DNA of 64,000 nucleotides from Oculina patagonica (Eukaryota). The position numbers and the translations under genes were made by a program. A model generated the notes under the pieces. That model saw only the letters and a list, made by a program, of their open reading frames with translations, was not told the origin of the DNA and made no database searches. This document shows, one piece after another, positions 183 through 60,900 of this stretch (positions are counted from its first letter, which is position 1; each line of letters begins with the position of its first letter). The stretch is taken from contig NC_135768.1 of the NCBI RefSeq assembly GCF_052425735.1, positions 19,406,001 through 19,470,000 of the forward strand, in the 5' to 3' direction.

Positions 183-13070
<12,888 letters not shown>

Positions 13071-41849: not shown

Positions 41850-42777
41850 ATGGCGGACGAAGCGAGCTTCAGCAATTCTTATCAAGAAATTTCTTTTAAA
41901 GTTCCTTGGGGTGTTATTGCAGCTAAAGCATGGGGACCCGAGGACGGCAAACCTTTCCTTGGGCTTCATGGCTGGCTAGACAACGCCAACACATTTGACA
42001 AACTAGTTAGTTTGCTGCCTGAAAACATCCGCCTTATCGCTGTAGATTTCCCAGGACATGGTAAATCTTCCCAACGGTGGCCTGGAATGTCGTATTTCCC
42101 CTTTGAATATGTTGCAGATGTAAAGAAAATTGTTTCAACTGGGATGGAAAAGATTTTCGATCATAGGCCACAGTATGGGAGCTTTTGTGGCTTCCCTGTA
42201 TGCGGGGAGCTTCCCAAATGAAGTCGAGAGTCTCGTATTGCTTGACTATGGTGGATATGCAGCTTCGAAGGGAAGCAAACCCGCTGAAGTCTTAGCTAGA
42301 TATGCAACCAGAATGTCAAACGTCACTCCAAACACTCCTCGTGTTTATGAAAGCGTAGAAGCAGCGGCTGCCAAACGAGAAGTATCTCTCGATGGTAACA
42401 TTTTACGTAAAGAAGATTCGTTGCTATTGACAAAGAGAGGAACTACAGTCACCAAGGATGGCGTTATTTTTTCGCACGATCCAATCCTTAAAGGTTTTGT
42501 TTACCCGTTTTTCCCACCTCAGTCCTCTTTAAAGCTAATTCTGTCCAAGATCAAGTCTGCAGTACTGGTATTAGAAGCTACAGATGCTGTGTACATGGTT
42601 GAAGGCATCCAGGAAACTCGTAAGGAGAGGCTTGATGTCATTTGTGATCATGCAAAGTTCAAGATGTGGAAGAGTGTTCAAGGTGGTCATCATTTGCATC
42701 TTGATAATCCTGAGCAAACTGCATTAGAAATTAAACGATTTTTAGCTATTCAGAACTCACTTGATAGCAAACTGTAG
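41850..42777 (+). pseudogene. SERHL: Serine hydrolase-like alpha/beta hydrolase, copy 1, split by a 2-bp deletion (about 42135)
   Basis: ORFs 41850-42221 and 42130-42777 join. The sequence reads gtttcaactg where copy 2 has gtttctcaactg. Motifs VPWG.IAAKAWG, LHGWLDN, GHSMG and GGHHLH; ends in SKL. Could be an assembly error. Confidence 0.8.
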
Positions 42778-42820
42778 TATGTGAGTGTTGGAGGGTCTTG
42801 TAAGTCTGGCAAGGTTTGGA

Positions 42821-43295
42821 ACCCGGGTTGGGGGGGGGGGGGGGAACTCCAATATATGAGCTATATGGGTATCTGCTGCTGTGAAGGGTATGGTTTTCAA
42901 GCAGTTCAGTCTGGGATAGGGTATAGAAATCAGAGAGTTTTTGGTTAGAATAGGGTATCATTTGCCGGGAAACTGATCAGAAGTATGACAAATTAGTTTA
43001 GAATAGGAATAGAAACTCGGAAGAGAAAGAGGCTTTCCGAAACATAAATAAGATCATCGTGGCAATGTTGTTGACAGATGGCTTTTAAAAAATGCAGGTC
43101 TGGGGTAGGGTAGGGATTTTTGGTGTCTAGTCTAGTATAGGGTTGCAAAATCCAGTTTAACTCCTCTCCCCATCCTGGGGCAAACCATTGATAGGTGCAT
43201 TAGGTCTGGAACAAGGTAAGGGTTTCAAAGTCCCAGTGGCACACCCCCACCCAAAAATATACAGAGTGCCCCCTCCCCTTCCCCCTTCCCCGTGG
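42821..43295. mobile_element. CCC...GGG-ended MITE just downstream of SERHL copy 1
   Basis: Near-identical to 45640-46069, at the same position downstream of copy 2. Confidence 0.55.
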
Positions 43296-43938
43296 TTTGG
43301 AATGGCTCTTATATGATTTTACTCTTCAAGAGAACAATTAAAAAACAACAACAGGAGCATATCCTAGCCCTGCAAAAACAATTACAGCAACTGCTCCATT
43401 AGAGAACTAGTAGAATTTAGGACACAGTTGCTCCTCTACAGGCAACTGTGCTGCTGAGGGAAGACTAGGAATGAACAAAGGGGGGTAAACGAGAAAGAAT
43501 AGGAACAATAGTGCTTCCTATGGCCTTTTGTTCCTAGTCTGTAAACATGTAATATGAATGCAAACAGCAAATTGTATTTCTGAGAATTAAGAGTCATAGA
43601 TTGATTTGTGAGAATTTTATTTATTATAGACCACCTGTTCTTATACGGACAGCACAAACTGTTCTCAAATAAATATCTATCAATCTGATGGTTATCAAAA
43701 TAAATTATGAATTTTGAACATTATAATTAAATCTTCTCGAGTTTTACTTTTTACAGTCAATTTACGAAAGTACAACCCTCCAAAAGTAGTGACAAACATT
43801 ACTAACAAAATGTCGTGAGAAACAATGGTGCGTCTGACCTTCCCACTTCCTTTACCTTTAACTCCCGGTTCCTCCCTCTTTGTTCTGGTAAATCTTTTCC
43901 CGATCCCCACCACCTTGGCAATCCTTCAAGGCAATCCT

Positions 43939-44249
43939 CATTCTCGTCCCCATAGCCCTTTCGTTTCTCTTAGCCGGCTGGGCCTTGGCATGAGAAAACA
44001 AAAGGCTCTGGGGACACTGGATTCTAAGACTTCCAGTCTTCATGTATGCAGTCATGATGTTTCAAAAGAATGTATGAGAGAGTTGTTGCGTTTTTGACTT
44101 CCGTTTGGGAATTCTTTGTACAAAACTGCCAATCAAAAAAATTCGAATTAATTTTAAAATCCTTTGTCCCCAGAGCCCTTCGTTTTCTCATGCCAAGCCG
44201 GCTAAGAGCCTAAGAGAAACGAAAGCTAAGGGCTATGGGGACAAGCATG
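43939..44249. mobile_element. Palindromic MITE with 9-bp TSD (MULE or AcademH type)
   Basis: CATTCTCGTCCCCATAGCCCTT ... AAGGGCTATGGGGACAAGCATG; exact TSD GGCAATCCT at 43930-43938 and 44250-44258. Confidence 0.8.
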
Positions 44250-44657
44250 GGCAATCCTATACCCACCCCCACCCTTCACCGCGGTCAAACGTAGCACATG
44301 CGCAATGACTTTAATTCCAGTCGCCCACGGCACAAATTTCCTGCGCAAAAATTCAAAGCAAACCTATTGCAGCAACACGGTGTCACGCCAAGATGAAATT
44401 AAAACACGAGCGTGCGACAAATAACCGTAAAAAATAAGAAAAGTCGGTAAAAGATAAGGGTTTCACTTTCAAAACTTGAAGCTGGTTAGTTTTTCTACAA
44501 TTTCTGAGCTTACTAAAGTTTACTTTACGCGCTCCAATCCCGCGCATGCGTAGACGATTGACCGCGGTGGACCCACCCCAAACCGTAGTTCCCACCCCCT
44601 CTCGTTTTCACCTCAATAAGCAAAAGCAAAAGACTGGGGCGAGTGGGCGTATTCAAT

Positions 44658-45590
44658 ATGGCGGACGAAGCGAGCTTCAGCAATTCTTATCAAGAACTTT
44701 CCTTTAAAGTTCCTTGGGGTGTAATTGCAGCTAAAGCTTGCGGACCCGAGGGCGGAAAGCCTTTCCTTGGAATTCATGGCTTGTTCGACAACGCCAACAC
44801 ATTTGATAAGCTAGCTTGTTTGCTACCTAAAAACATTCGCTTTATCGCAATGGATTTCCCAGGACATGGTCAATCTTCCCACCGATGGCCTGGAATGTGG
44901 TATTTCTTCTATGAATATGTTGCAGATGTAAAGAAAGTTGTTTCTCAACTGGGATGGGAAAGGTTCTCGATCATAGCCCACAGTATGGGAGCTTTTGTGG
45001 CTTCCCTGTATGCGGGGAGCTTCCCAAATGAAGTCGAGAACCTTGTATTGATTGAGTATGGTGGATACGCGGCTTTGAGAGCAAACATACCCGCTGAAGT
45101 CTTAGCTGGATATGCAACCAAAATGTTAAACGTCACTCCAAGCACTCCTCGTGTTTATGAAAGCGTAGAAGAAGCGGCTGCCAGACGAGAAGTATCTATG
45201 GATGGTAACACTTTACGTAAAGAAGATGCGTTGCTATTGACAAAGAGAGGAACTACAGTCACTAAGGATGGCGTTATTTTTTCGCACGATCCAGTCCTCA
45301 AAGATCATATTTACCCGTTTTTGCCACCTCAGTCCTCTATAAAGCTAATTCTGTCCAAGATCAAGTCTGCAGTACTGGTATTAGAAGCTACAGATGCTGT
45401 CAGGTTGATGGTTGATGGAATGCAAGAAACTCGTAAGGAGAGGCTTGATGTCATTCTTGATCATGCAAAGTTCAAGATGTGGAAGAGAGTTCAAGGTGGT
45501 CATCATTTGCATCTTGATAATCCTGAGCAAACTGCATTAGAAATTAAACAATTTTTAGCTATTCAGAGCTCACTTGATAGCAAACTGTAG
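44658..45590 (+). CDS. SERHL: Serine hydrolase-like protein copy 2, 310 aa, intronless, PTS1 (SKL)
   Basis: VPWGVIAAKACG, IHGLFDN, DFPGHGQS, AHSMG nucleophile elbow, GGHHLHLD; start set at the MAD ATG shared by all copies. Confidence 0.9.
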   Translation: MADEASFSNSYQELSFKVPWGVIAAKACGPEGGKPFLGIHGLFDNANTFDKLACLLPKNIRFIAMDFPGHGQSSHRWPGMWYFFYEYVADVKKVVSQLGWERFSIIAHSMGAFVASLYAGSFPNEVENLVLIEYGGYAALRANIPAEVLAGYATKMLNVTPSTPRVYESVEEAAARREVSMDGNTLRKEDALLLTKRGTTVTKDGVIFSHDPVLKDHIYPFLPPQSSIKLILSKIKSAVLVLEATDAVRLMVDGMQETRKERLDVILDHAKFKMWKRVQGGHHLHLDNPEQTALEIKQFLAIQSSLDSKL

Positions 45591-45639
45591 TACATGTATG
45601 CGACTGTTGGAGGGTCTTTTAAGTCTATCAAGATTTAGA

Positions 45640-45676
45640 ACCGGGGGGAGGGGCACTCCCATATATGAACTACATG

Positions 45677-45711
<35 letters not shown>

Positions 45712-46069
45712 AGTTCAGTCTGGGATAGGGCATTCATTATATAAATCAGAGAGTTTTGGTCTAGAATAGGGTATCATTTCCTGGGAAACTGATCAGCAGT
45801 ATGACAAATTAAGTTCAGAATCGGAATAGAAACTCAGAAGAGAAAGAAGCTTTCCTATTAACGTAAATAAAATCACCGTGGCAATGTTGTTGACAGATGG
45901 TTTTCCATTAAAAACACTGATAGTGATACAGTTCTAAAAAATGCAAGTCTGGGATAAGGTAGGGATTTTTGGTGTCTGGCTGAACATGGTCTGGTACAGG
46001 GTAAGGGTTTCAAAGTCCCAGCTGCACACCCCGGCCCCGCCCAAAAATATACAGAGTGCCCCCCGGGGG
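45640..46069. mobile_element. CCC...GGG-ended MITE downstream of SERHL copy 2
   Basis: ccggggggagggcactc ... gagtgcccccccggg; paralog of 42821-43295; a related element lies at about 47136-47526. Confidence 0.6.
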
Positions 46070-48121
46070 TTTGGGATGGCTCTTATTCTTGAAGAGAACA
46101 ATTAAAAAACAACAACAGGAGCATACTCCTGGCCCTGCAAAAACAATTACAGCAAGCTGCAACTGCTGCATTAGAGAACCAGTAGAATTACAAACACGCT
46201 ACTTATGGGTACCCTAGCTAGCTTCTCCTCTGCAGCCTGCTAGACTTTCTCAAAGCCCGTTTCTGGTAGTTAGGTCATCTGGTGGAAAATGGACTTTTTT
46301 CGCCTGCATCGTGGCATTTTTTACCGACCAGTTTTCTGGTCAGCGGTGTGTCGGGGGTGTGACAACGCTGATATCCAATCAGGGAACGCAAGACGTTAAT
46401 TATCATCCGGGAAACTTGATCCTCACGAATCCTTCACTTGTTCTGTAAATGCTCTCGACGTGAGAGAAAGTTAAGAAGTGCGAAGGAAATGAACGTGAGA
46501 GAAGCTATAAACGCGGGTTAAACGAAGCTTGGTTCCAAGGAAATTCGAGAGATTCAACGAGCACAGTTTTTACAGATAATTTAGTCGAACAGCTTTCTTT
46601 GTCTAGCTTTGCACCAACGAAAATTTTTAAGTTCGCGCAAGCTGGCGACTAAGTTTGGCCCGTTTTAAAGCTTTCAGAGATAACTCTGGTTCGAATTTTT
46701 GGCTTCCACGCACAAGATACAGACTGTTTCTTTCGATTTCGGGGAAGGACTGACTCGGGAAACAGTTTGCTGGAGTCATCTCCATTCATTGTGAAATTCA
46801 CGTGTGTATACTGTCATTTGAGAAATGTTTTATATTTTTTTTATTTGAAAGCGAGAGGGCTGTCAAATTTACTTCACACCCATCACTTTTCACGCCTGCA
46901 ATATGCAAATTAAATTCAATCTCTTGCAGGCGGAACAAGTGGACTTGCATCTCGCATTTTTTTTTTCATTTCTTTTGTTTGTGTTCTGAAGGCCTAGCTA
47001 CCAAGCTGAATTTTAATATATCGAAAGAAGCCTATTGAACCAAGAAAACAATATGCTGGGAAATGGGATTTGGGCAAATTTATGGGATTTATACCTCTCA
47101 TCCCCTTCCTCCTTTTTTAGGACCCTCCTTACGGGCCCGGGGGCACTCCCATATAAGGGCTATACGGGTATGTATGCTTTTTGCCTATCTGACTCTGGAA
47201 CAGGGTATAAAAATCACCCTTTTGACTCTGGAACAGGGTCGATTTTTTTTACCAGAATCCTGATTAAACACGATCGAGTTTAGCTATGAAACTCCGCTCC
47301 TCTCATCGCTTTATCTCCGAGCCACAGACGAAGTCAAGTGAGCGCATTGTGATATACGCTACATATATTTCCATTGTGGATATTGTCTGGAACAGGGTAC
47401 CTATTTTGCAATGTTTGTCTGGAACAGGGTCGAAAATTCAGCGTTTTTTCTCTTGAACAGGTCCAGAGCCTCAGAGACTCAGCGGCACACCCCCGTAGTA
47501 AATTTTAGGGAGTATCCCCCCCCGGGCTTACGGGTAACAGGAAAGGAGAGGGTTATAAGTAAAATTGCCAAGCTGACAGGAAACAGGAAAAAAATTGCCA
47601 CATTGAACAATATTTTGAAACAGAAAGAGAACAAGGAGGATTGAACTGGGTCAGACCCACCATTGTTTCTTATGATATTTTGTTAGTTATGTTTGTTGCT
47701 ACTAGTGGTGGGTTGTACTTTCGTAACTTGGCAGTAAAAAGTCAAACTCAACAAGATTGAAGCATAATGTTCAAATTTATAGTCATAATTTATTTTGTTA
47801 GACTTACTATCAAATTGATAGATATTTATTTCAGAACAGTTTGTACTGTTTGTATATTAAAGAACAGGTGGTCTATAATAATTACTTATTCTCAGAAAAT
47901 AATTTTGCTAATTACATGATTGAAGCATACTGCAGTTGAATCCCGATAACTCGAACCTTGGAGGGAAATCCAAAAAGGTTCGAGATATTGGTAGTTTGAG
48001 TTATCGAGGGTAAAATTAGTAAGAAAACAACCTGGAGGGGAATTGGATAGTCATAATCTGTTTTGATAGACTTCTATCAGATTGATAGATATTTATTTCA
48101 GAACAGTTTGTACTGTTTGTA

Positions 48122-48451
48122 CCGTAATGATTAGATTTAGCGCCCTCCTTCCAATAAGCGCCCCCTTCCGAATAAGCACCCCCCTTCAAATGTGTTTTGT
48201 CAATAAGCGCCCCTATTCCAATAAGCACCCCCATTCTAATAAGCGCCCCCATTCTTATAAGTGCCCCTATTCTAATAAGCGCCCCTATTGTGGATAACTG
48301 CCCCTACTTAAGTCATACTTAACATTTGATTGTTTCTCAAAAAATAAATAAGCGCCCTGTCCCAAATAAGAGCCCTGTCTCGAATAAGCACCCTCCTTTG
48401 AGGTGCCAAAAAGTAAAATAAGCACCTGGGCACTAAATCGAATCATTACAG
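48122..48451. mobile_element. Tc1/mariner-type MITE with internal aataagcgcccc repeats
   Basis: TIR ccgtaatgatt...gccc / gggc...aatcattacag, TA TSD. The empty site is visible in the local duplicate at about 47840-47870. Confidence 0.8.
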
Positions 48452-48631
48452 TATATTAAAGAGCAGGTGGTCTATAATAATTATTTATTCTCAGAAAATA
48501 ATTTATGACAAATAATTATCAGAAATTCATTTTGCTATTTACAGGCATAATTGGAGCATAGTAAGTAGAGGGAGCTCATATTTGAGGAAGAATGACTATG
48601 CTTGCCTGCTGATATGTCTGTATAATGCCCA

Positions 48632-49573
48632 CTACAGCTTACTGGTGCATAAATCATGCTTGTGGGGTGCGTCAACAGCCAAGAACTTTCTGATTTCTTG
48701 AGCAGTTTGCTCAGGATTATCCAGATGTAAATGATGACCACCTTCAACTCTCTTCCACATCTTGAACTTTGCATGATCACAAATGACATTAAGCCTCTCC
48801 TTACGAGTTTCTTGAAATCCACCAGAGAACACAGTACCAGTAGCTTCTAATACCAATACTGCACACTGAATCTTGGACAGAATTAGCTTTATAGAGGACT
48901 GAGGTGGGTAAAACGGGTAAACATGGCCTTTAAGGATTGGGTCGTGCGAGAAAATAACGCCATCCTTAGTGACTGTAGTTCCTCTCTCTGTCAATAACAA
49001 CGCATCTTCCTTACGCAAAATGTTACCAGCGAAAGGCTCTTCTCTTCTGACAGCCGCTGCCTCCACACTTTCATAAACACGAGGAGTTTTTTGAATCATG
49101 TTTGACATTCTGGTTGCATATTTAGCTAAGCTTTCAGCGGGTTTGTTTGCGCGCCAAGCAGCGTATCCGCCATAGTCAAGCAATACAAGGTTCTCTACTT
49201 CAGTTGGAAAGCTCCCCGCATACAGGGAAGCCACAAAAGCCATCATACTGTGGCCTATGATCGAGAACTTTTCCCATCCCAGTTGAGTAACAACTTTCTT
49301 TATATCAGCAACATATTCGAAGTCGAGATACGACATTCCAGGCCATCGGTGGGAAGATTTACCTTGTCCTGGAAAATCCATTGCAATAAAACGGATGTTT
49401 TCAGGCAGCAAACGAGCTAGCTTGTCAAATGTGTTGGCGTTGTCTAGCCAGCCATGAAGCCCAAGGAAAGGTTTGCCGTCCTCGGGTCCCCAAGCTTTAG
49501 CTGCAATAACACCCCAAGGAACTTTAAAAGAAATTTCTTTGTAAGAATTGCTGAAGCCCGGTTCGTCCGCCAT
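48632..49573 (-). CDS. SERHL: Serine hydrolase-like protein copy 3, 313 aa, intronless, PTS1 (SKL)
   Basis: LHGWLDN, DFPGQGKS, GHSMM, GGHHLHLD, C-terminal CTSKL. Confidence 0.9.
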   Translation of the reverse strand: MADEPGFSNSYKEISFKVPWGVIAAKAWGPEDGKPFLGLHGWLDNANTFDKLARLLPENIRFIAMDFPGQGKSSHRWPGMSYLDFEYVADIKKVVTQLGWEKFSIIGHSMMAFVASLYAGSFPTEVENLVLLDYGGYAAWRANKPAESLAKYATRMSNMIQKTPRVYESVEAAAVRREEPFAGNILRKEDALLLTERGTTVTKDGVIFSHDPILKGHVYPFYPPQSSIKLILSKIQCAVLVLEATGTVFSGGFQETRKERLNVICDHAKFKMWKRVEGGHHLHLDNPEQTAQEIRKFLAVDAPHKHDLCTSKL

Positions 49574-49627
49574 TATATTGAAATTACTCCCACTCGCCCC
49601 AGTCCTGCTCAATATTGAGAGGCCGGG

Positions 49628-49939
49628 AATAGGCTAGTTTCGAATTACGCTCCACTGATCATAAACAAAAGGTTCAGGGGAATAATTTGAATTTGCTTGT
49701 TTTATTCCCCTCAGCCTCGACTTCACTCCTTTGTTTTATAGGATCAGTAGAGCGTAATTCGAAACTAGCCTATTCTCTATTTTCCAATTGCCCATAATGC
49801 ACTTTGTTTGCCCCCCAAATTTTGCATAAACTATTGTTTTGGAAATATGCAGTCCTCCCAAGAGAATTTGAAAACAATAGTTTATGCAAAATTTGGGGGG
49901 CAAACAAAGTGTATTATGGGCAATTGGAAAATAGAGAAT
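49628..49939. mobile_element. Two abutting hairpin MITEs (49628-49774 and 49772-49939) immediately upstream of copy 3
   Basis: aataggctagtttcgaattacgctc / gagcgtaattcgaaactagcctatt, and attctctattttccaattgcccataat / attatgggcaattggaaaatagagaat. Confidence 0.75.
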
Positions 49940-49991
49940 TGGGATTTGGGCAAATTTTCACTGGCAGAACGGGATTTGGGTCACTGGGACT

Positions 49992-52900
49992 CACAGGAAA
50001 AAATTCTGAAATTCCAAGTTGGACTTTTATTGGAAAATAACAAAATTAACATTCCAATATTGGAATACTATTGGAAAAACATTGGAATACTACATAATTT
50101 CTCCTGTACGATTAAGTTAGTTGGTAGATTATTGGTATATCATTCATTTAAAAATCCAACTTGGTTTTTTAATGGTAATTTATTGGGACATCATAAAATA
50201 CAACATTGGAAAACCACTGCAGTATTTGGTAGATTATTGGTTTATCAGAAATTTAACAATCCAAGTTGTTTTTCTATGGTGATTTATTGGAATATTATGT
50301 CCAGCAAGTGAAAAGTACAAAAAAATATTTATATATTTATATGAAACCATGCCAGACTGAATGCTGTACTGACTAAAATAACCCTCATCCCTCAAAGTAA
50401 TAAAAATTGTTGTAGCCTGATTGCAAAATTTGAAAAAATAAAATTACATGTACATGTATCCTTGTTTCAAGTTCCTCCATTTAAAATAGCAATTACTTTT
50501 ATGGCAAAAATGTATAAACAATCTTTCAAAACTGTGAAGACAGTTTGGTTTGTATGTGGGGTTACACGCAGTTTCAACTTCTACAAATATGCATGGCTAC
50601 TTTTGTAGTTACAGTGTACCATTTACGAACTATCACTGGAAGCTGCTGCTAAGCACTTTATATGTAGATCAATAAGGTTAGACAAAAAGGCCTCTGAATG
50701 CCACCCACATGATAAGACCTGTGGAACTGATTGCTAATCCTCTTCATCGATCCAAGAAGAATGTTCCACCTGCCAGTGACCCTTTGACAATAACAGCTAG
50801 TTAGAATCTCTTCTTCTGACGGCTGCATATCTTGTTAAATCAAGTCGATCCATTGATCGCTTTCGCCATTTACATTCTGATATTTCTTCGATACGGTAGA
50901 TACGTTATGTATGGGGAACTATTATGTCCGCAACGATACATGCACTGACCAAACGGATCGTGGGCGCCTGGTACAAGCCGCTGACTGCGCATGAGAGATT
51001 GCGCGCCATTTTTCGCGCCAAAATACTACTGTTCGACTGTTCGAGACGTCAACCAGGAGTGAAAGGAGCGGGAAAAGAAAGTCTAGAAAATTATTTCCAA
51101 ATGGCAAGTTGTTCGTCCGAAAGAGGAGACCTTTCTAGCCCAGGTAATTTTATTAATACGAGTTTCTAGTTGGTCATATAGATAAAATCGCGACGTGATG
51201 AGCTTTTTACCAATTACAAGGCACTGGTTTTTTATTTCTCGAAACTCAACGACTTGATGTAAAACGACTATGCCAGAATGGCGACAACAATCCTCAATTT
51301 TGATCAGCAAATCACTTATTACCTAAAAACTCGAGTTTACATTTATATTTAACGAAACACTTTAATTTCACAGAAGTTCTTTGACCTCGAAATCCCTGAA
51401 ATTCTCACAAAAGTCTGAAGTGCTTTTCATGCTAACTTCGGCCTTTTTGTCTGCAATATGCATATGGACATAGTGTAATTTTATCACAGAGTGATTTTAT
51501 TAGCTTTAATTTCGTATTTGTACGCTGCAGTCTGTGAGGTGACTCTTCTAGCTAGTGTAAATAGACTGTCCGGGTCAGGCTGGGCTTAACACTCAGCTAA
51601 ATTAAAAATGACCATTAACTTGAAATTTTTAAGCCCTCCGGTTCTTGTTATAATTCAGAGTTACAGTTAAATACAACAAATGAAGTGGAAAAATGGAGCC
51701 CCAGTGACATGGCCATATGTGGTTAGAGAGTGTTCAGCCTGAAATGAAAGAGGAAGCACAACTTTTGCAGAGTGAGTTGAGTTTGTGGTGGGCTCTTCAT
51801 TCTACTTTTGTCTGTTCCTGTAATTTGATGAGAAACATCCTTTATATTATTATTTAGCATATACATATAGCATTACCATTTAAGCTTATACACGATGTTT
51901 TGTTTGTGTAGAATCTGAGATATCTGGAAAAACATTAACCATGGTTGATAGGGCATGCCTCAGGGACATCAACATAACATCAGTCGGTAAACAACTGACC
52001 ATTTTGATAATTTGTAATAACTCCTTTATAGCAATTTAACCAGTATGGTAATGGCTCATATCATTATCAAGGCTGGAATTTTTAAAGCATTTCTCCAGAG
52101 CTAATTTATGCAAATGTAGCAATCTACAAGAGCAGTTCAATGACCCAATGACCAGTTTTCCATTTTTCTGATTTTTTTTTTCAGCGGCTATACGAAGCCA
52201 TATCTTACAATGGGTAAATGGAAAGAATCGGAAGTTAACTGATGGGTTTGATTTTGAGGTATGTAAAAAGTATATTTCTTTGTTACAAGCATTTACAAAT
52301 TTCTATAACATACGTACTGGCTTTATAACTACCACGATACTTCTGTTTGAACTTAAAGTGTTACATAATTGACAACTTTGTTGGTTTTTTTGCTTCAATA
52401 GAAATCAAGAATACCAGCCAAAAGGGCCATTTTAAGTGAACCAGAAATGAGCGAAGCCCTCGGTAAGTTAATGATGACAAATGAACTCATTCTTGGGCCT
52501 TAAAATGGTATCAATTTTCGCTTTCTTTATCCTTAAATAGGGTCAGGGTTTACGAACCTTAGCGGCACGCCCCTATCTGAAATTAATGGGAGTACCCCAC
52601 CCCCTGGGAGTAATCCCCCTAGTTCTGTTATTTCTATGAAATCACAAATATTGAGTAGCAGTCATTACATGTACACATGTATAAATTTTATTAAAGCTTG
52701 AATTACATCTAGATTCAGTGTCTGAATTTTAGCACATTGGATTTATCTTCTTAACATAAGTAACCTAATTCTTACTTTTTTTGCTTGCAGCCGAAACAGA
52801 TACAGAGAAACCGACAGAGACTGAAAATTCTGAAAACGTGGATGAAATATCTGATTACAGCGCACAGCTGTTATGTGCTGTAATATTTCATGTACCTGCA

Positions 52901-54120
52901 TTCAGAAATCTAAGCCTTAAAAAACACCTTGTTGAAGGTGCCAAACTACTCAAGATAAAGACACGAGGCTGTGGAAAATATGAATTGGCCAAAAAAATAG
53001 CAATTTCTCTCGTCAACGAGGTGTTTGTTCGTATTCAGGCACCAATAAACTACCGAGATTTAACAAGGGAGCAAATAATCATCATCAAAGAGCTTCAGCT
53101 GCCATCTCCACGCTCTTCATCTAACAGCAGTCCTGATCTCAGTTGTTCCTCGTCATATTCTACTGAGTCTGTGAATGAAACAGATGACTCTTTGGTGTCA
53201 GAGCCATCTGATGAGTAACACTGCTGAAAGGATAGTGGACATATATTGAAACCTGAATACTGTGTTATTGGATACTGTTGATTATCACATTAGTTTATAA
53301 CTGTGTGACATGCAAGTTACTATAAAGAGACAGTTGTTGTTCCCATTTTTTAATATTTCAATGTTTTGCAAGTGATATAACATTGGACACTGATCATTGT
53401 CACATTTGTGTGGCAGCATAAGAAAGGAGTCAGTTATTGTTCATGTTGGATTTTTTTTACCACTTTTAAGTGATAATAATTTAATTATTACATTGGAAAT
53501 GTGTTTTTATAGCATTTCTGGTCATGTCTACAGTGGCAATATTATTACAAGTAACAGAATAGTCCCTAAATATTAAAAGTGACCTTTATTATCATAGCTT
53601 TGACATTTTCTTAAGCAACTTTCACTGCTGGACACTGTAAAGCAATAACCAACCTTGGTTATGCTCATTACAGTGCAGGACAATTTTAAGAATAACCAAC
53701 ATTGGTAACAATCCTTCCCAAGCTGGAACCTCAAGAAAAAATCCAACCTTGATAATGCACTTTCCAATGTTGGGCAATTATTTTTAAGAATAACCAACCT
53801 TGGTAATGCTTTCTACAATGTTGGACAATTTTAAGATTAACCAACATTGGTAATGCTCTTTCCCAAGTTGGAACATCTAGAAAAACTCCAATCTTGGTAT
53901 TGCTCTTTCCAATGTTGGAAACTCTTTTAAGAAATACCAACATTGGAAATTCAAAATAGATTCCCAACCTTGGATTCCTATATATGACTTACCAATGTTG
54001 GAAAGTGTATCTCTTTTCCCAAAATTGGTAAACTTACTAATTTTCCACTAAATTCCCAATGTTTTACCGAAAAATAACCAATGTTTCCCCAAATTTGGAA
54101 TCTCAGAATTTTTTCCTGTG
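49992..54120 (+). mobile_element. CACTA/EnSpm-like (CMC) non-autonomous element, 4129 bp
   Basis: TIR CACAGGAAAAAATTCTGA(A/G)ATTCCAA; exact 3-bp TSD ACT (49989-49991, 54121-54123). An empty site of the host repeat is at about 57980-58000. Subterminal ccaac(a/c)ttgg repeats are present; no transposase was seen. Confidence 0.8.
51101..53218 (+). pseudogene. Six-exon SAM-domain gene inside the CACTA-like element (51101-51143, 51659-51771, 51912-52013, 52185-52258, 52402-52462, 52791-53218), with one 2-nt frameshift
   Basis: Exon phases are consistent except for a TG duplication at about 51718. The restored protein VEKWSPSDMAI-WLESVQPEMKEEAQLLQKSEISGKTLTMVDRACLRDINITSVGKQLTIL fits the SAM consensus. 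Confidence 0.6.
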
Positions 54121-54947
54121 ACTGGGAATCGAAAACAAATAAACAATAGAACTGGGATACGGATTTGGAAAATCGAGAAAACTATGCTGGGAAATGGGAT
54201 TTGGGCAAAATGTGGGCTGAGAAATGGGATTTATACCCCCCTTCATTATGCATTCCTTCTCTTCAGGACCCCCTGAAGAGAAGAGTTCGTCCAAACCCGA
54301 CATTGTAGACACATTGCCTGCGACTGACAGCGAAGGCTTGCTAGAAACTACACCTTGAGCCACCGTCAAAATATCGGTCTTTGTAATAGAATCAACTGCA
54401 GTGGTGACCTACGGGTACCAAGAGAGGAGAGAGGTGGCTGGAATCGGGGAAAAAGATTGCCACATTATAACAATAGAAAGAGAAAAATTAATTAGGACTG
54501 ATGGAACTGGCTCAGACCTACCATTGTTTGTTATGACATTATGTGAGTTGTGTTTGTCACTAATTTTGGAGGATGGTACTTACAAGTCACTATTAATATC
54601 CCAGGGGGGTACTCAGGATTTGAAGTGACGGGGATGATCGCATTGGGGCAAAAGTCAAGACCCCCAAAAAATCCCTAGGGCTCTAAACAAAACCCCAAAA
54701 AATCCCTGTACCAAAAATCAACCCCCCAAAAAATCCCATGCCAAATTTCTGACCCATTAAATTTTTCAGAAAAGGGGAATCATCTGAAGATATAACACAA
54801 AGAAAACATTAGAAACACGTTCAGTGTTTGTATTTTATTCGCAGAACTATGCGGCCAAGGCACTACCACGAATCTTTAGATTGTTTTTAATACCAAAAAA
54901 ATCCCTACTTAAATCAAGCCACCCAAAAAAATACTTGGCAAATTTTC

Positions 54948-56453
54948 GAGATATGTCCAGAAATGCACGCAATGACGAAAATGACGAATTTGGCGAAATT
55001 TCACCAAAGTCTAAGATTTGAGCGAACGAGCTCGAGAGGGGGGTACCACGAAAGCGGCGAATTCGACGAAAACGACGAATTCGACGAAAATGATGAATTT
55101 GGCGAAATTTCGCCAAAGTCTAAGATTTGAGCGAACGAGCTCGAGAGGAGGGGTACCACGAAAGCGGCGAATTCGACGAAAACGACGAATTCGATGAAAA
55201 TGACGAATTTGGCGAAATTTTGCCAAAGTCTAAGATTTGAGCGAACGAGCTCGAGAGGAGGGGTACCACGAAAGCGGCGAATTCGACGAAAACGACGAAT
55301 TCGACGAAAATGATGAATTTGGCGAAATTTCGCCAAGTCTAAGATTTGAGCGAACGAGCTCGAGAGGAGGGGTACCACGAAAGCGGCGAATTCGACGAAA
55401 ACAACAAATTCGACGAAAATGACGAATTTGGCGAAATTTCGCCAAAGTCTAAGATTTGAGCGAACGAGCTCGAGAGGAGGGGTACCACGAAAGCGGCGAA
55501 TTCGACGAAAACGACTAATTCGACGAAAATGACGAATTTGGCGAAATTTCGCCAAAGTCTAAGATTTGAGCGAACGAGCTCGAGAGGAGGGGTACCACGA
55601 AAGCGGCGAATTCGACGAAAACGACGAATTCGACAAAAATGACGAATTTGGCGAAATTTCGCCAAAGTCTAAGATTTGAGCGAACGAGCTCGAGAGGAGG
55701 GGTACCACGAAAGCGGCGAATTCGACGAAAACGACGAATTCGATGAAAATGACGAATTTGGCGAAATTTCGCCAAAGTCTAAGATTTGAGCGAACGAGCT
55801 CGAGAGGAGAAGTACCACGAAAGCGGAGAATTCGACGAAAATGATGAATTTGGCGAAATTTCACCAAAGTCTAAGATTTGAGCGAACGAGCTCGAGAGGG
55901 GGGGTACCACGAAAGCGGCGAATTCGACGAAAACGACGAATTCGACGAAAATGATGAATTTGGCGAAATTTCGCCAAAGTCTAAGATTTGAGCGAACGAG
56001 CTCGAGAGGAGGGGTACCACGAAAGCGGCGAATTCGACGAAAACGACGAATTCGACGAAAATGATGAATTTGGCGAAATTTCGCCAAAGTCTAAGATTTG
56101 AGCGAACGAGCTCGAGAGGAGGGGTACCACGAAAGCGTCAGCACTGCATGGGTTGAGTTAAATGACATAACTTTGCTGGCTTGACGAATTTGACAAAATT
56201 TCGTCGAATTCGTCATTTTCGTCAAATTCGTCAGCACTGCATGGGTTGAGTTAAATGACATAACTTTGCTGTCTTGACGAATTTGACGAAATTTCGTCGA
56301 ATTCGTCAATTTCGTCAAATTCGTCAGCACTGCATGGGTTGAGTTAAATGACATAACTTTGCTGGCTTGACAAATTTGACGAAATTTCGTCAAATGACGA
56401 ATTTGACGAAATTTCGTCATTTTCGTCGTTGCGTGCATTTCTGGACATAAGTG
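54948..56453. mobile_element. Foldback/MULE-like TIR element with 8-bp TSD, filled with tandem repeats
   Basis: Inverted ends tatgtccagaaatgcacgcaa.gacgaaaatgacgaa; exact TSD AAATTTTC at 54940-54947 and 56454-56461. Confidence 0.7.
54975..56136. repeat. 110-bp tandem repeat, about 11 near-identical units (one 109 bp, one 92 bp), followed by a 93-bp repeat x3 (56137-56400)
   Basis: Unit gaaagcggcgaattcgacgaaaacgacgaattcgacgaaaatgatgaatttggcgaaatttcgccaaagtctaagatttgagcgaacgagctcgagaggaggggtaccac recurs at 55050, 55160, 55270, 55379, 55489, 55599, 55709, 55819, 55911, 56021 and 56131 (last one truncated). Confidence 0.95.
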
Positions 56454-56931
56454 AAATTTTCCTACCCAAAAAAATCCCGAAATCAAAAATTTCAAACCCC
56501 AAAAAATCCTTCGATCATCCCCGTCACTTGAAATCCTGAGTACCCTCCTGGGATTATTATTACGTTTCATTCTTGTCGATTTTGACTTTTTACTGTCAAC
56601 TTGACAGTAAAAAGTGACTTATAGTGACTATCATAATTTATAGTGACTATCATAATAATATTTATAGTGACTATCACAATTTATAGTGACTATCATAATT
56701 TATTTTGATAACCATCGAATTGACAGATATTTATTTGAGAACAGTTTGTACTGTATGTATAAGAACACATGGTCTACAAAAATTAATTTTATTTTCAGAA
56801 AATAATTTATGACTTATTATTCTCAGTAATTCATTTTGCTAATTACATGATTGGGGCATAGTTAGTAGAGGGAGCTCATATGCGATGAAGAATGGCTATG
56901 CTTGTCTCCTGATGTGTCTGTTTTATGCCCA

Positions 56932-57876
56932 CTATAGCTTACTGGTGCATGAGTCATGATTGTGGGATGAGACACGAGCTAAGAAGTTTTTAATTTCTTG
57001 TGCAGTTTGCTCAGGATTATCCAGATGTAAATGATGACCACTTTTGATACTCTTCCACATCTTGAACTTTGCATGATCACAAATGACATTAAGCCTCTCC
57101 TTCTCAGTCTCTTGATGTCCGTCAAACATGTACACAGTATCTGTAGCTTCTAATACCAGTACTGCAGACTGAATCTTGGACATAATTAGCTTTAAAGAGG
57201 ACTGAGGTGGGAAAAACGGAAAAACAAGAGCGTTAAGGATTGGATCGTGCGACAAAATAACACCATCCTTGGTGACTTTAGTTCCTCTCTTTGCCAATAA
57301 CAACGAATCTTCTTTACGTAAAGTGTTACCATCAAGAGATACTTCTCGTTTGGCGGCCGCTGCTTCTACGCTTTCATAAACACGAGGAGTTTTTTCATTC
57401 ATGTTTGACATCTTAGTTGCATATCTAGCTAAGACTTTAGCAGGTTTGTTTGCACTCGAAGCAGGGTAGCCACGATAATCAATCAGCACCAGATTCTCGA
57501 CTTCATTTGGGAAGCTCCCCGCATACAGGCAAGCTAAAGAAGCTCCCATACTGTGGCCTATGATCGAGAACCTTTCCCATCCCAGTTGAGAAACAACTTT
57601 CTTTACGTCAGCAACATATTCGAAGTGGATATATGGCATTCCAGGCCATCGGTGGGAAGATTGACCATGTCCTGGAAAATCTACAGCGATAAAGCGAATG
57701 TTTTCAGGCAGCAAACCAGCTAGCTTGTCAAATGTGTTGGCGTTGTCTAGCCAGCCATGAAGCCCAAGAAAAGGCTTGCCGTCCTCAGGTCCCCAAGCTT
57801 TAGCTGCAATAACACCCCAAGGAGCTTTAAAAGAAATTTCTTTATAAGAATTGCTGAAGCCCGGTTCGTCCGCCAT
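56932..57876 (-). CDS. SERHL: Serine hydrolase-like protein copy 4, 314 aa, intronless, PTS1 (SKL)
   Basis: LHGWLDN, DFPGHGQS, GHSMG, SGHHLHLD, C-terminal CTSKL. Confidence 0.9.
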   Translation of the reverse strand: MADEPGFSNSYKEISFKAPWGVIAAKAWGPEDGKPFLGLHGWLDNANTFDKLAGLLPENIRFIAVDFPGHGQSSHRWPGMPYIHFEYVADVKKVVSQLGWERFSIIGHSMGASLACLYAGSFPNEVENLVLIDYRGYPASSANKPAKVLARYATKMSNMNEKTPRVYESVEAAAAKREVSLDGNTLRKEDSLLLAKRGTKVTKDGVILSHDPILNALVFPFFPPQSSLKLIMSKIQSAVLVLEATDTVYMFDGHQETEKERLNVICDHAKFKMWKSIKSGHHLHLDNPEQTAQEIKNFLARVSSHNHDSCTSKL

Positions 57877-58389
57877 ATTGAAATTTTTCCCACTCGCCCC
57901 AGTCTTCTGGTTATTGAGATGGTGGAAAGGGGTAAAATGTATAGATTTGGGCAAATTTTCACTGGGAAAGTGAAATTTGGGTCACTGGAACCGGGAATCG
58001 CAAACAAATCAGCAATAGAACGAGCACTGGGATTTGGAAAATTAGGAAAACAATAGGCTTGGAAATGGGACTTGGCAAAATTTGGGCTGGGAAATTGGAT
58101 TTATAACCCCCTCCCCTTATGGGTAACAAGAGAGGAGAGAGAAGAGGGCTATATATAAGTAGGAGTGCCAAGGTGGTAGGAATCTGAAAAAATTTGTCAC
58201 ATTGCATAATATCTTACAATGAAAAAATATATAAAGAGGCTGGAACCGTGAGTAACAGGTACTGAAGTGGGAAGGTTAGACGCACCATTGATTCTCACAA
58301 CATTTTGTTAGTAATGTTTGTACTCCTTTTGGAGGGTTGTACTTTTGTAACTTGACACTAAAAATTAACCTTGAGAAGATTGAAACATA

Positions 58390-58730
58390 CTGTGAATGAT
58401 CGATTAAGCCCCGCTACTCGATTAAGCACCGCACTCAAATAAGCGCAGAACCTTTACCGAAAATAATTTAATAAGCACCACCCTCGAATAAGCGCCGCAG
58501 CCCTACTTTGAGTATTTACAAAGAGACTGTGAAACTGTGTTCATGTTACCTCTTGTATTTCATTCGAAATAATTTTATATTAAATTGTGCATACCTAGTG
58601 TGTGCCCTTAGTGTTTTACTGTTAGTTGAAGTAAGTACCGCTCTTGAATAAGCGCCTCTCTCGAATAGCCGCTGCACGTTTAACAGGGAAAACCAAATAG
58701 GTGTCCCTGCGCTTAATCGGTCATTTACGG
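58390..58730. mobile_element. Tc1/mariner-type MITE
   Basis: ctgtgaatgatcgattaagc / gcttaatcggtcatttacgg, TA TSD; empty site (gcaTAatgttcaa) in the paralogous spacer at about 47762. Confidence 0.75.
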
Positions 58731-58962
58731 TAATGTTCAATAGTCATAATTTATTTTGATAACTATCAGATTGATAGATATATTATTTGAGAACAGTTTG
58801 AATAGCTTGTACAAGAACAGGTGATCTGTGATAATTTATTCTCAGAAAATAATTTGACTATTGTAATTATTTTCAGAAATTAATTTTGGCAATTACATGA
58901 TTGGGGCATAGTTAGTAGAGGGAGCTCATATGTGAGGAAGAATGGCTATGCTTGTCTCCTAA

Positions 58963-59457
58963 TGCATCAGTCAATTCCAGCAGTGCCCATCCCCCCGCCC
59001 CGGGCAACCGTGGGGCATTTCCTAATGTTGCCCATCCCGAGGGTGGGGCATTTGCGTACCTCGGGTTGACCCCCGGGCATTTGACACGTGCTTTCAAAAC
59101 CGTGGAGTGAGTCGCGTATTCGTGACAAAGGCGTTTATAGGCCAAGACGTGGACTATGTTGCAGATTAGTTAGTTCATGAAGGACTAGAGAAGCTCGTGG
59201 ATGTTCGTGGATGTTTTTAAAGGTATATTTTCTCAATTTTAGATATTTCTTCATTGCTAAGAAGCAACAACTTGTATTATATTCTTATATCACATATCAA
59301 GATATTGAAAACAATCAACCCGGGAGCGGGGCATTTGCCCGGTTCCTTCATCCCCACCCCGGGGAATTTTCCAATTTTTTTTAAAGAAATGCTAATGCCT
59401 GGGGGTTAGCCCAGGGGGGGAGGGGGGGCATGGGCACTGCTGGAATTGACTGATGCA
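58963..59457. mobile_element. PIF/Harbinger-type MITE inserted about 22 nt after the stop of copy 5
   Basis: Perfect TIR tgcatcagtcaattccagcagtgcccat; TAA TSD (58960-58962, 59458-59460); empty site behind copy 4 (about 56910). Confidence 0.85.
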
Positions 59458-59479
59458 TAATGGGTCTGTTTTATGCCCA

Positions 59480-60424
59480 CTATAGCTTACTGGTGCATGA
59501 GTCATGATTGTGCGATGAGACACAAGCTAAGAAGTTTTTAATTTCTTGTGCAGTTTGCTCAGGATTATCCAGATGTAAATGATGACCACTTTTGATACTC
59601 TTCCACATCTTGAACTTTGCATGATCACAAATGACATTAAGCCTCTCCTTATGAGTTTCTTGATCTCCGTCAAACATGTACACAGTATCTGTAGCTTCTA
59701 ATACCAGTACTGCACACTGGATCTTGGAGAATATGAGCTTTAAAGAGGACTGAGGTGGCAAAAACGGAAAAACAAGAGCTTTATGGATTGGATCGTGCGA
59801 AAAAATAACGCCATCCTTAGTGACTGTAGTTCCTCGCTTTGTCAATAACAACGAATCTTCTTTACGTAAAGTGTTACCATCAAGAGATACTTCTCGTCTG
59901 ACAGCCGCTGCTTCTACGCTTTCATAAACACGAGGAGTTCTTGGATTCATGTTTGACATTCTAGTTGCATATTTAGCTAAGCCTTTAGCAGGTTTGTTTG
60001 CGCTCAAAGCAGGGGGTCCACCATAATCAAGCAATACGAGACTCTCGACTTCATTTGGGAAGCTCCCCGCATACAGGGAAGCCACAAAAGCTCCCATACT
60101 GTGGGCTATGATCGAGAACTTTTCCCATCCCAGTTGAGAAACAACTTTCTTGACATCAGCAACATATTCAAAGTGATGATACGGCATTCCAGGCCATCGG
60201 TGGGAAGATTTACCATGTCCTGGGAAATCCATTGCAATAAAGCGGATGTTTTCAGGCAGCAAACGAGCTAGCTTGTCAAATGTGTTGGCGTTGTCTAGCC
60301 AGCCATGAAGCCCAAGGAAAGGCTTGCCGTCCTCGGGTCCCCAAGCTTTAGCTGCAATTACACCCCAAGGAGCATTAAAAGAAATTTCTTTGCAAGAATT
60401 GCTAAACCTCTTTTTGTCCGCCAT
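59480..60424 (-). CDS. SERHL: Serine hydrolase-like protein copy 5, 314 aa, intronless, PTS1 (SKL)
   Basis: LHGWLDN, DFPGHGKS, AHSMG, SGHHLHLD, C-terminal CTSKL. Confidence 0.9.
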   Translation of the reverse strand: MADKKRFSNSCKEISFNAPWGVIAAKAWGPEDGKPFLGLHGWLDNANTFDKLARLLPENIRFIAMDFPGHGKSSHRWPGMPYHHFEYVADVKKVVSQLGWEKFSIIAHSMGAFVASLYAGSFPNEVESLVLLDYGGPPALSANKPAKGLAKYATRMSNMNPRTPRVYESVEAAAVRREVSLDGNTLRKEDSLLLTKRGTTVTKDGVIFSHDPIHKALVFPFLPPQSSLKLIFSKIQCAVLVLEATDTVYMFDGDQETHKERLNVICDHAKFKMWKSIKSGHHLHLDNPEQTAQEIKNFLACVSSHNHDSCTSKL

Positions 60425-60558
60425 ATTGAAATTACACCCACTCGCCCCAGTCTTCTGCTTATTGACATGAAAACGAGAGGCTTGGGAACTACGGATTATA
60501 GAAAGGGAGAGGGCTAGGGGTGGCGCGCAAACAAACCCGCTACAGTCTTTATAGATAG

Positions 60559-60900
60559 ATATGCTACCAGAACGTCAAACATCAATCTAAAAGCTCCTCG
60601 TGTTTATAAAAGCGTTAAGGCAGCGGCTGTCAGACGAGAAAGACCTTTCGATGGTAACAATTTATGCAAGGAAGATGCGTTGTTATTGACAGAGGGAGGA
60701 ACAACAGTCATCAACTGATGGTTGTTATTTTTTCGCACGATCCAATCCTTAAAGGTCTTTTTCACCCGTTTATTGTATCTCGATGGCCTTCGAAGTTAAT
60801 TCTTTCGAAGATTCAGTTTGCAGTGTTGGTATTAGAAGGAACAGATAGTCGGGTACACAAGAATGTTAAAGACGAAGAATTGAAACCCGGAAGGAAAGGG
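60559..60900 (+). pseudogene. Internal fragment of a sixth SERHL copy
   Basis: YATRTSNINLKAPRVYKSVKAAAVRRERPFDGNNLCKEDALLLTEGGTTV / VIFSHDPILKGLFHPF...KLILSKIQFAVLVLEGTD. It has a frameshift and lacks the N-terminal half and the catalytic His. Confidence 0.85.

Follow-up and report, generated by a model that had tools for sequence, protein, structure and literature searches.

The closest described relatives of the genes considered here are the vertebrate proteins SERHL and SERHL2 and Drosophila kraken, which share with the coral copies the same fold and the same length. Vertebrate SERHL2 is about 40% identical to the coral proteins over at least 92% of the length, and the motifs HG, GHS-x-G, RG, Asp211 and GHH-x-H are common to the group, as is a C-terminal tripeptide of peroxisomal type (residues are numbered throughout after copy 5 of the array described below). 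Unlike vertebrate SERHL and kraken, the coral genes are intronless, lie in tandem arrays and differ from copy to copy mainly in loops near the catalytic face. To our knowledge, no substrate has been described for a SERHL protein of any organism, and a function therefore cannot be transferred to the coral copies. A literature search returned no paper on SERHL in corals.

Among solved structures, the closest are PA1622 of Pseudomonas aeruginosa (PDB 7AL5/7AL6; profile E 5e-77, TM 0.80) and the CurM thioesterase of curacin synthesis (CurM TE; PDB 3QIT; profile E 2e-39, TM 0.75). Both share with the coral copies, in alignment, an acidic residue after strand beta6. They differ in being bacterial and only 22 to 32% identical to the coral copies, and CurM TE is a domain of a polyketide synthase. 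The catalytic triad of CurM TE is reportedly Ser-His-Glu, its Glu following beta6. We know of no described function for PA1622, and a literature search on 7AL5/7AL6 gave nothing relevant. A different kind of precedent comes from the arrays of opsin, MHC and some digestive or detoxifying enzyme genes, where conversion homogenises most of the gene and the parts that determine specificity stay divergent.

The locus analysed here is a 64-kb window of the genome of the scleractinian coral Oculina patagonica, in which five intronless SERHL-like genes and one fragment form a tandem array. Copies 1 and 2 lie on the forward strand at 41850-42777 and 44658-45590, and copies 3, 4 and 5 on the reverse strand at 48632-49573, 56932-57876 and 59480-60424. 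Copies 2, 4 and 5 are intact, encoding 310, 314 (counted from the conserved Met) and 314 amino acids, and copy 5 is the most canonical. In copy 2, four private changes (W28C, D32G, L39I and L43F) adjoin the HG oxyanion motif at positions that are invariant in other corals. Copy 3 has an open frame of 313 amino acids. A deletion of 2 bp between 42134 and 42135 interrupts the frame of copy 1, which is otherwise open to the stop after -SKL; the copy is either a very recent pseudogene or the product of an assembly or allele error. Logan contigs from DNA run X1, which may be the assembly's own sample, carry no indel at the frameshift site, a result too weak to count as independent confirmation of the frameshift. 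A sixth copy, broken and partial, lies head to head with copy 5 on the forward strand (60518-60861); it corresponds to residues 139-250, read in two frames, and has a TGA stop. In a presumed RNA run, fragmentary Logan contigs fell only on the coding parts of copies 1 and 2 and none on unique intergenic DNA, which is too weak for an expression claim. Several other stony corals also carry SERHL genes in tandem, with arrays of 2 to 6 copies.

The five copies and the fragment belong to the SERHL (serine hydrolase-like, or kraken) family of alpha/beta hydrolases. All copies match Pfam Abhydrolase_1/6 with E values of 1e-17 to 1e-21, and matches to proteins named SERHL2 span corals, anemones, amphibians and birds (E 1e-143 to 1e-46). 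Among the homologs named SERHL2 at NCBI, that of Desmophyllum has 73% identity, and the vertebrate proteins stand at about 40%. The product of about 314 residues gave an AlphaFold2 model with a pLDDT of 88, the canonical strand order and a cap at residues 133-232 inserted after beta6. When the fold was searched against Swiss-Prot, the top five matches were all SERHL or kraken (human, zebrafish and mouse SERHL, and Drosophila kraken), with TM scores of 0.79 to 0.82. The tripeptide SKL, which as a PTS1 signal predicts peroxisomal localisation, closes the proteins of all five copies and those of all 21 further full-length coral genes in the analysis.

The catalytic residues can be placed with varying certainty. 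The nucleophile, Ser109 of the GHSMG-type elbow (codon at 60098-60100 of the reverse strand in copy 5), is invariant in 93 family members, as is the probable catalytic histidine, His281, after beta8 (59582-59584, reverse strand). Arg197, in the same 93 sequences, and Asp211 are also invariant. The catalytic acid is probably Asp/Glu133 after strand beta6 (Asp133 in copy 5, codon 60026-60028, reverse strand), to judge from the alignments: 91 of the 93 family members (98%) carry Asp or Glu there, and the position lines up with the strand end that bears the acid in CurM TE. The usual acid site after beta7, position 246, is poorly kept, with Asp246 in 56% of the 93 sequences; the invariant Asp211 is a further candidate. 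The elbow follows the pattern small-x-Ser-x-small, and copies 1, 2, 4 and 5 read (G/A)HSMG. Copy 3 reads GHSMM instead of GHSMG (G111M), has lost the small residue and is thus the only copy to fail the rule. Because it also carries H70Q, D246G and a one-codon deletion in the last of the variable segments described next, copy 3 may be catalytically impaired.

The analysis follows up an earlier note on this DNA, which held that divergence among the copies is concentrated in four short segments of the pocket and cap, set in a nearly invariant scaffold, and took this as a sign of diversifying selection on substrate specificity. In copy 5 the segments lie on the reverse strand as follows. S1 (60170-60184, residues 81-85) lies at the end of the beta4-alphaB loop. 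S2 (59999-60022, residues 135-142) opens the cap and starts two residues after the conserved Asp/Glu133. S3 (59759-59788, residues 213-222) is a cap loop just after the invariant Asp211 and has the highest omega across clades. S4 (59666-59689, residues 246-253) is the indel-prone beta7-alphaE loop. By the fold topology of the AlphaFold2 model, all four lie either in the cap or along the catalytic edge of the sheet, which is consistent with loops that line the active site or cap; the specific idea that they line the pocket draws on topology and is weakest for S1. The lid arginine of CurM TE that reportedly binds sulfate aligns inside S3.

All 20 peptide strings quoted for the segments are present exactly in the sequence, and the enrichment is directly observed: with 9.6% of the alignment columns, the segments account for 23.5% of all amino-acid differences, an excess of about 2.4-fold. 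The concentration had nonetheless been overstated, since 76.5% of pairwise differences fall outside the segments. Variable columns number 25 of 32 in the segments versus 85 of 283 elsewhere, so that 30% of scaffold columns vary and "nearly invariant" is too strong a description. Averaged over pairs of copies, amino-acid identity is 53% within the segments and 83% in the remaining sequence. In a permutation of the window scan most of the leading clusters had p values between 0.003 and 0.03, and the dispersion index was 2.15. Equally hot zones lie beyond the four segments: the N-terminal tail, the C-terminal tail (columns 302-310, the hottest window of the scan) and two stretches of the cap, at residues 140-163 and 175-183. 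The alignment is gap-free over S1 to S3; in S4, copies 2 and 3 carry in-frame indels, and part of its divergence is therefore alignment-dependent. Multi-nucleotide mutation was tried as a cause of the clusters and rejected, codons with multiple changes in the segments not being above expectation from difference density in 10 of 11 pairs tested.

Paralogs in the array have exchanged sequence. Recombination between them is detected by the PHI test (p = 0.002) and by tracts shared between pairs of copies (p 0.001 to 0.009), and homology among the copies ends about 45 nt upstream of the ATG. Trees are discordant along the gene. The core groups by species, and trans-species grouping is rejected for it (AU p = 0.001). 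The segments and tail group copies 1 and 2 with a copy of the sister species, which also has the 15-nt tail deletion; trans-species grouping is favoured there by a dlnL of 8 to 15, with AU tests that are marginal on short data (p 0.06 to 0.10). The recombination signal and the discordant trees together identify concerted evolution by gene conversion.

Synonymous divergence follows the same division. Within the genome the core has a dS of 0.21, against 0.38 between species, a within/between ratio of 0.56; the corresponding values for the segments are 0.42 and 0.38, a ratio of 1.10 (random-block P = 0.007). Within the genome, dS in the segments is thus double that in the core. The contrast between segments and scaffold in O. 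patagonica is due largely to homogenisation of the scaffold. In the sister species the within-genome dS excess is only a trend (P = 0.11). In another coral clade segment dS is doubled even among orthologs; some of the excess may thus be an intrinsic property or stem from biased counting, in which case the standard M8 test would also be inflated. The array resembles those of opsin and MHC type in that grouping by species (seen in neither segments nor tail) and the halving of within-genome dS are both confined to the core, and in that conversion tracts are present. It differs in that the coral evidence is moderate, with short regions and marginal AU tests, and in that the role of the divergent parts is putative.

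Site models fitted to 26 coral genes bear on the question of selection. In the comparison of M7 with M8 that the earlier note had suggested, M8 was better (2dlnL 92.2), with 11% of sites at an omega of about 2, and candidate sites fall in the segments; sites with omega above 1 are therefore found. The other nested tests agree (M1a/M2a 2dlnL 74.5; M8a/M8 2dlnL 66.6), and 13 of the 22 candidate sites (P > 0.8) lie inside the four segments. The signal also appears in two other clades and in the window copies alone (2dlnL 17.1), where 24 of 34 candidate sites lie outside the segments. With the segments taken alone on their own tree, the 2dlnL values are 6.4 and 5.8 (p 0.04 and 0.008), and a parametric bootstrap of 86 replicates gave p of about 0.012. 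Given its own tree and synonymous rate, then, the omega > 1 signal of the segments survives only modestly (p about 0.01 to 0.04), at sites 140, 141, 222 and 250. Non-synonymous evolution of the four loops is about 3.5 times faster than in the remainder of the gene. For the segments as a whole, every estimate of omega is near 1 or lower: pairwise values are 0.46 to 1.1, and likelihood fits with the synonymous rate left free give 0.54 to 0.97. The proposal of diversifying selection consequently keeps the support of site models that favour an omega > 1 class, and is weakened by segment omegas of 0.5 to 1.0, by detectable gene conversion and by a contrast that owes much to the uniform scaffold.

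The account that we favour, and consider moderately probable, combines a core kept uniform by conversion, modest positive selection at a few loop residues and a substrate-binding surface that has diversified in part. The array itself would be shaped by duplication, by the decay of copies and by gene conversion. Conversion would hold the core fold similar among the copies of one genome, and the four loops of the catalytic face and cap, other cap positions and the C-terminal tail would retain older, copy-specific sequence. On average the loops are near neutral (omega about 0.7), and in several lineages of corals a few positions (140, 141, 217, 222, 250 and neighbours) change recurrently, with omega at about 1.5 to 2. 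This probably means that the substrate-binding surface has been partly diversified among paralogs and that homogenisation of the scaffold sharpens the look of the pattern. The array and its SERHL affiliation, the enrichment, the signal of conversion and the outcome of the site models are direct results; we infer that the loops contact substrate and that changes in them alter specificity.

The alternative that survives best, possible if somewhat unlikely, is relaxed constraint together with gene conversion and nothing more. The loops, as the flexible and least constrained portions of the fold, would then drift neutrally, and conversion would homogenise the better-matching scaffold, with tracts that break at diverged, indel-bearing loops; specificity would undergo no adaptive change, and the omega > 1 class would be an artefact of discordant genealogies and synonymous-rate variation. 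The intermediate segment omegas, the raised segment dS and the detected recombination fit this alternative, as do the S4 indels, the low model confidence of S3 (pLDDT about 69) and the fact that distant SERHL proteins also vary most in these loops, S2 to S4 being their least conserved parts. A dual-rate model, with both rates free per site, likewise returned zero segment sites with P > 0.9, although its per-site power is too low to confirm or exclude selection. Against neutral drift, M2a and M8 beat their neutral nulls despite partition-specific trees, and the nulls are beaten also with the segments' own tree and rate, as in the bootstrap above. Furthermore, S3 has an omega of at least 1 in four separate clades, and the variability does not extend to loops at the opposite edge of the sheet, where posterior omegas are low (0.16 to 0.42).

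A second alternative sees the array as decaying, with most copies redundant and becoming pseudogenes, so that the clustered changes record early damage to the active site and not new specificities. The frameshift of copy 1, the broken sixth copy, G111M in the nucleophile elbow of copy 3 along with H70Q, and the four private changes of copy 2 near the oxyanion motif at otherwise invariant positions all point in that direction, as does an M0 omega of 0.50 in the window vs 0.39 in another clade. Yet four copies keep fully open frames, Ser, His and the SKL signal, and their private changes at conserved positions (0 to 4) are within the range of other corals. Overall omega is well below 1, and the same loop variability occurs in intact copies of at least four other coral genomes, which makes general decay improbable. 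Least credible of all is a mutational or alignment artefact, in which complex multi-nucleotide changes, indels or a shifted alignment of the short loops would mimic clusters of replacements: the S4 indels of copies 2 and 3 and the change of all three codon bases in G111M of copy 3 and in the Ile/His difference between copies 4 and 5 in S1 would suit it, but S1 to S3 are gap-free.

Returning to the favoured account of a converted core with a few selected loop residues, a bolder extension of it is doubtful. Across stony corals, selection would counter conversion at three or four substrate-contacting loops and so keep a small peroxisomal SERHL repertoire with different substrate ranges, for example towards lipids or xenobiotics of symbiosis. 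If that were true, the array would be a lineage-specific adaptive enzyme system and positions 140, 141, 217, 222 and 250 would form a specificity code. As it stands, the SERHL array is a case of ordinary but real loop diversification, a familiar evolutionary mode for duplicated enzymes that opens no new question beyond two uses. It illustrates compactly how gene conversion can set a few loops off against a uniform scaffold and how the same process can inflate standard tests for positive selection. It also offers a natural panel of close variants, with differences enriched near the catalytic site, for finding the substrates of SERHL proteins and the loops that set their specificity.

The stretch from 41.8 to 60.9 kb of the window is a real tandem array of the SERHL family, comprising five genes, each a single exon of 310 to 314 codons, and one broken partial copy. 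Copies c1 (41850-42777) and c2 (44658-45590) lie on the plus strand, and c3 (48632-49573), c4 (56932-57876) and c5 (59480-60424) lie on the minus strand; residue numbers below follow c5. Every copy matches alpha/beta-hydrolase families of Pfam and all end in SKL. The closest named protein matches come from stony corals, namely SERHL2 of Desmophyllum pertusum (73% identity) and a match in Acropora millepora (59%). The broken copy (60518-60861, plus strand) covers residues 139-250 at about 57-62% identity, contains one TGA and a frame change, and is inverted directly upstream of c5 in a head-to-head arrangement. Its presence points to continuing birth and death of copies within the array. No further close SERHL copy is found elsewhere in the genome.

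Three copies carry defects or unusual changes of their own. In c1, the loss of 2 bp between 42134 and 42135 shifts the frame, which then stays open through the rest of the gene; the read contigs, fragmentary as they are, neither speak against this deletion nor suffice to show expression. In c2, four substitutions (W28C, D32G, L39I and L43F) hit positions that do not vary among 21 other coral copies. In c3 the nucleophile elbow reads GHSMM as opposed to GHSMG elsewhere, accompanied by H70Q. The Gly-to-Met change at codon 111 of c3 alters all three bases (GGA to ATG) immediately 3' of another ATG and looks like a small complex event instead of three separate substitutions. Private hits at conserved positions number 0 to 4 per copy, which is inside the range of copies from other corals.

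The surroundings of the genes contain repeats and unrelated reading frames. Between c1 and c2, the intervals 42832-43347 and 43864-44250 are high-copy interspersed repeats with numerous contig joints at their edges and a summed contig depth in a DNA run of 10,000 to 165,000, compared with 20 to 130 around them. The 7 kb separating c3 and c4 include unrelated ORFs at 49992-54120, for example one of 145 amino acids at 52781-53218, and a satellite array at 54974-56395. The satellite consists of about 8 to 10 copies of a 110-nt unit that are 93 to 97% alike, is also readable at periods of 220 and 312 nt, and is followed by a 93-nt repeat; it has a strong AT skew (0.24) and many spurious overlapping minus-strand ORFs. 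Two further minus-strand ORFs lie elsewhere. The one at 1794-2399 (201 aa) is strongly enriched in Arg, Lys and Ser and combines extended SR/RS stretches with a short central part of globular appearance, so that it resembles a histone H1 or protamine-like protein. The other, of 154 amino acids at 9670-10134, is Glu-rich and coiled-coil-like and resembles an exon from a Beclin-type gene.

Intronless SERHL arrays of 2 to 6 copies are also present in several other coral assemblies, from which 21 intact genes were extracted to complete a codon alignment of 26 genes. In the whole-gene tree, the five window copies form one clade and the six copies of a sister coral assembly form another, and a third species group retains two orthologous lineages. 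The neighbourhoods of the arrays are unlike between species: one is flanked by a Pao/BEL-type retrotransposon polyprotein of 1767 amino acids (L012:15196-20499) and another by a 7TM receptor gene (L015:18615-19517). Two contigs of assembly ERZ25067872, L011 and L017, hold arrays that are related but not identical, perhaps as haplotigs or through duplication of the array; one gene of their nearly identical pair, L011_10001/L017_17293, was left out of the pairwise dS summaries.

The earlier note held that divergence among the copies is concentrated in four short segments, S1 to S4, within a nearly invariant scaffold. Every peptide that it quoted agrees with the window sequence. In the five-copy alignment, 25 of 32 segment columns are variable versus 85 of 283 elsewhere, and pairwise identity averages 53% inside the segments and 83% in the rest. 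Amounting to 9.6% of the columns, the segments contribute 23.5% of all pairwise amino-acid differences. The differences among paralogs are enriched about 2.4-fold in loops of the catalytic face and cap. Variable sites do cluster, though only modestly (dispersion index 2.15; scan-statistic p of 0.003 to 0.03 for most of the top windows). Since the hottest scan window is the C-terminal tail and two stretches of the cap, 140-163 and 175-183, equal the segments in variability, both "concentrated" and "nearly invariant" were overstatements.

The position of the segments was examined in an AlphaFold2 model of c5 built from an alignment of 42 sequences (pLDDT 88, pTM 0.89). By fold it is closest to SERHL of human, zebrafish and mouse and to kraken of Drosophila (TM 0.79 to 0.82); among solved structures, PA1622 (7AL5/7AL6) and the thioesterase of CurM (3QIT) rank highest. 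The model places beta4 at 60-65, alphaB at 84-98, beta5 at 103-108 followed by Ser109, beta6 at 126-132, the cap from 133 to about 232, beta7 at 238-244, alphaE at 254-268, and beta8 at 271-277 followed by His281. Ser109, His281 and Arg197 are invariant among 93 family members, and position 211 is Asp or Glu throughout. The catalytic acid of this fold usually lies after beta7. Since an acidic residue (Asp or Glu) follows beta6 at position 133 in 91 of the 93 members while position 246, following beta7, is Asp in only 56%, residue conservation points to 133 as the most likely acid. In the CurM thioesterase the acid likewise follows beta6. In the model, each of the four segments belongs either to the catalytic edge of the sheet or to the cap: S1 (81-85) at the end of the beta4-alphaB loop, S2 (135-142) beginning two residues past the putative acid, S3 (213-222) in the cap after Asp211, and S4 (246-253) in the beta7-alphaE loop. 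From this topology they would line the pocket, least securely in the case of S1. For the loops at the other edge of the sheet (29-33, 54-59, 99-102, 122-125, 233-237 and 269-270), posterior mean omega (dN/dS) is 0.16 to 0.42, compared with 1.1 to 1.5 for the segments; variability is therefore not a general property of loops.

Goldman-Yang site models were fitted with our own implementation rather than PAML; its M0 fit (omega 0.415, kappa 1.97) matched the branch lengths of the IQ-TREE GY+F3X4 fit with a scale of 1.0006. For the whole gene across 26 genes, the log-likelihoods were -9261.26 (M1a), -9224.03 (M2a), -9248.55 (M7), -9202.46 (M8) and -9235.75 (M8a). The three likelihood-ratio tests each reject the null with high significance, and M8 assigns 11% of sites an omega of 2.06. 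The comparison of M7 with M8 proposed in the earlier note is thus positive, and 13 of the 22 sites with a posterior above 0.8 fall within the 31 segment columns (83, 84; 140, 141; 213, 216-219, 222; 249-251), the other nine being 5, 6, 8, 107, 148, 181, 226, 254 and 307. The signal recurs in the window plus sister genes (2dlnL about 30), the two-ortholog clade (about 15) and the window copies alone (17.1), where the segments hold 10 of 34 candidate sites. For the segments alone, M1a/M2a and M8a/M8 give 2dlnL of 7.7 and 6.2 with a free tree scale, and 6.4 and 5.8 on the segments' own inferred tree, with sites 140, 141, 222 and 250 above 0.9. A parametric bootstrap under M1a reached 6.4 in 1 of 86 replicates. 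No excess of multi-nucleotide changes was found in the segments.

Synonymous rates temper this signal. Pairwise dS is 0.29 to 0.57 in the segments versus 0.12 to 0.30 elsewhere, giving a segment omega of 0.46 to 1.1. When synonymous and non-synonymous rates are both free, segment omega is 0.54 to 0.97 (pooled 0.77; 0.36 for the rest), the synonymous excess in the segments is significant (p = 0.0003), and no segment site attains P = 0.9 or above. In the stable-ortholog clade, the dS of the segments is roughly double that of the core even between orthologs, so some of the excess may be intrinsic or stem from counting bias.

Gene conversion among copies also bears on the contrast. The PHI test is significant for the five copies (p = 0.002), with significant shared tracts between c1 and c5 (codons 117-138), c2 and c5 (108-132), c1 and c3 (33-55) and c4 and c5 (272-308). 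Upstream of the start codon, homology between copies is lost after about 45 nt, and downstream after 0 to 330 nt, despite a dS of only 0.14-0.32. M8 is still favored over M8a when partitions have separate trees (2dlnL 21, 25 and 32 for three partitions; 12.2, 7.3, 22.5, 26.4 and 2.2 for five). Trees built from the core outside the segments cluster genes by species (support 100), whereas segment-only and tail trees cluster c1 and c2 with one sister-species gene (support 88 and 92) that shares with them a deletion of 15 nt in the tail and SYFPF as S1 peptide. Core data reject this trans-species grouping (dlnL 70, AU p = 0.001), and segment and tail data disfavor grouping by species (dlnL 8.4, 12.6 and 14.6; AU p 0.10, 0.10 and 0.06). 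Pooled core dS is 0.21 within this genome, 0.20 within the sister and 0.376 between the two, compared with 0.42, 0.31 and 0.38 for the segments; random blocks of the same size reach the segment dS with P = 0.0075 in the window and P = 0.11 in the sister. The core has thus been homogenised within genomes, with the segments and tail largely escaping, and this accounts for much of the visual contrast between segments and scaffold. The possibly intrinsic part of the segment dS excess qualifies this reading.

Diversifying selection on the pocket, as the earlier note proposed, is therefore sustained in part: the site test is positive with sites where predicted, but the loops are near-neutral on average and their contrast owes much to conversion. 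Under the most stringent controls, support for an omega greater than 1 is moderate and comes from a few sites. The most consistent candidate for selection is S3, whose omega is about 1.0 for the window copies, 1.33 for those of the sister and 1.36 in the comparison of the two ortholog lineages, and greatly exceeds 1 for the young paralogs of a fourth species, where very few synonymous changes lie behind the estimate.
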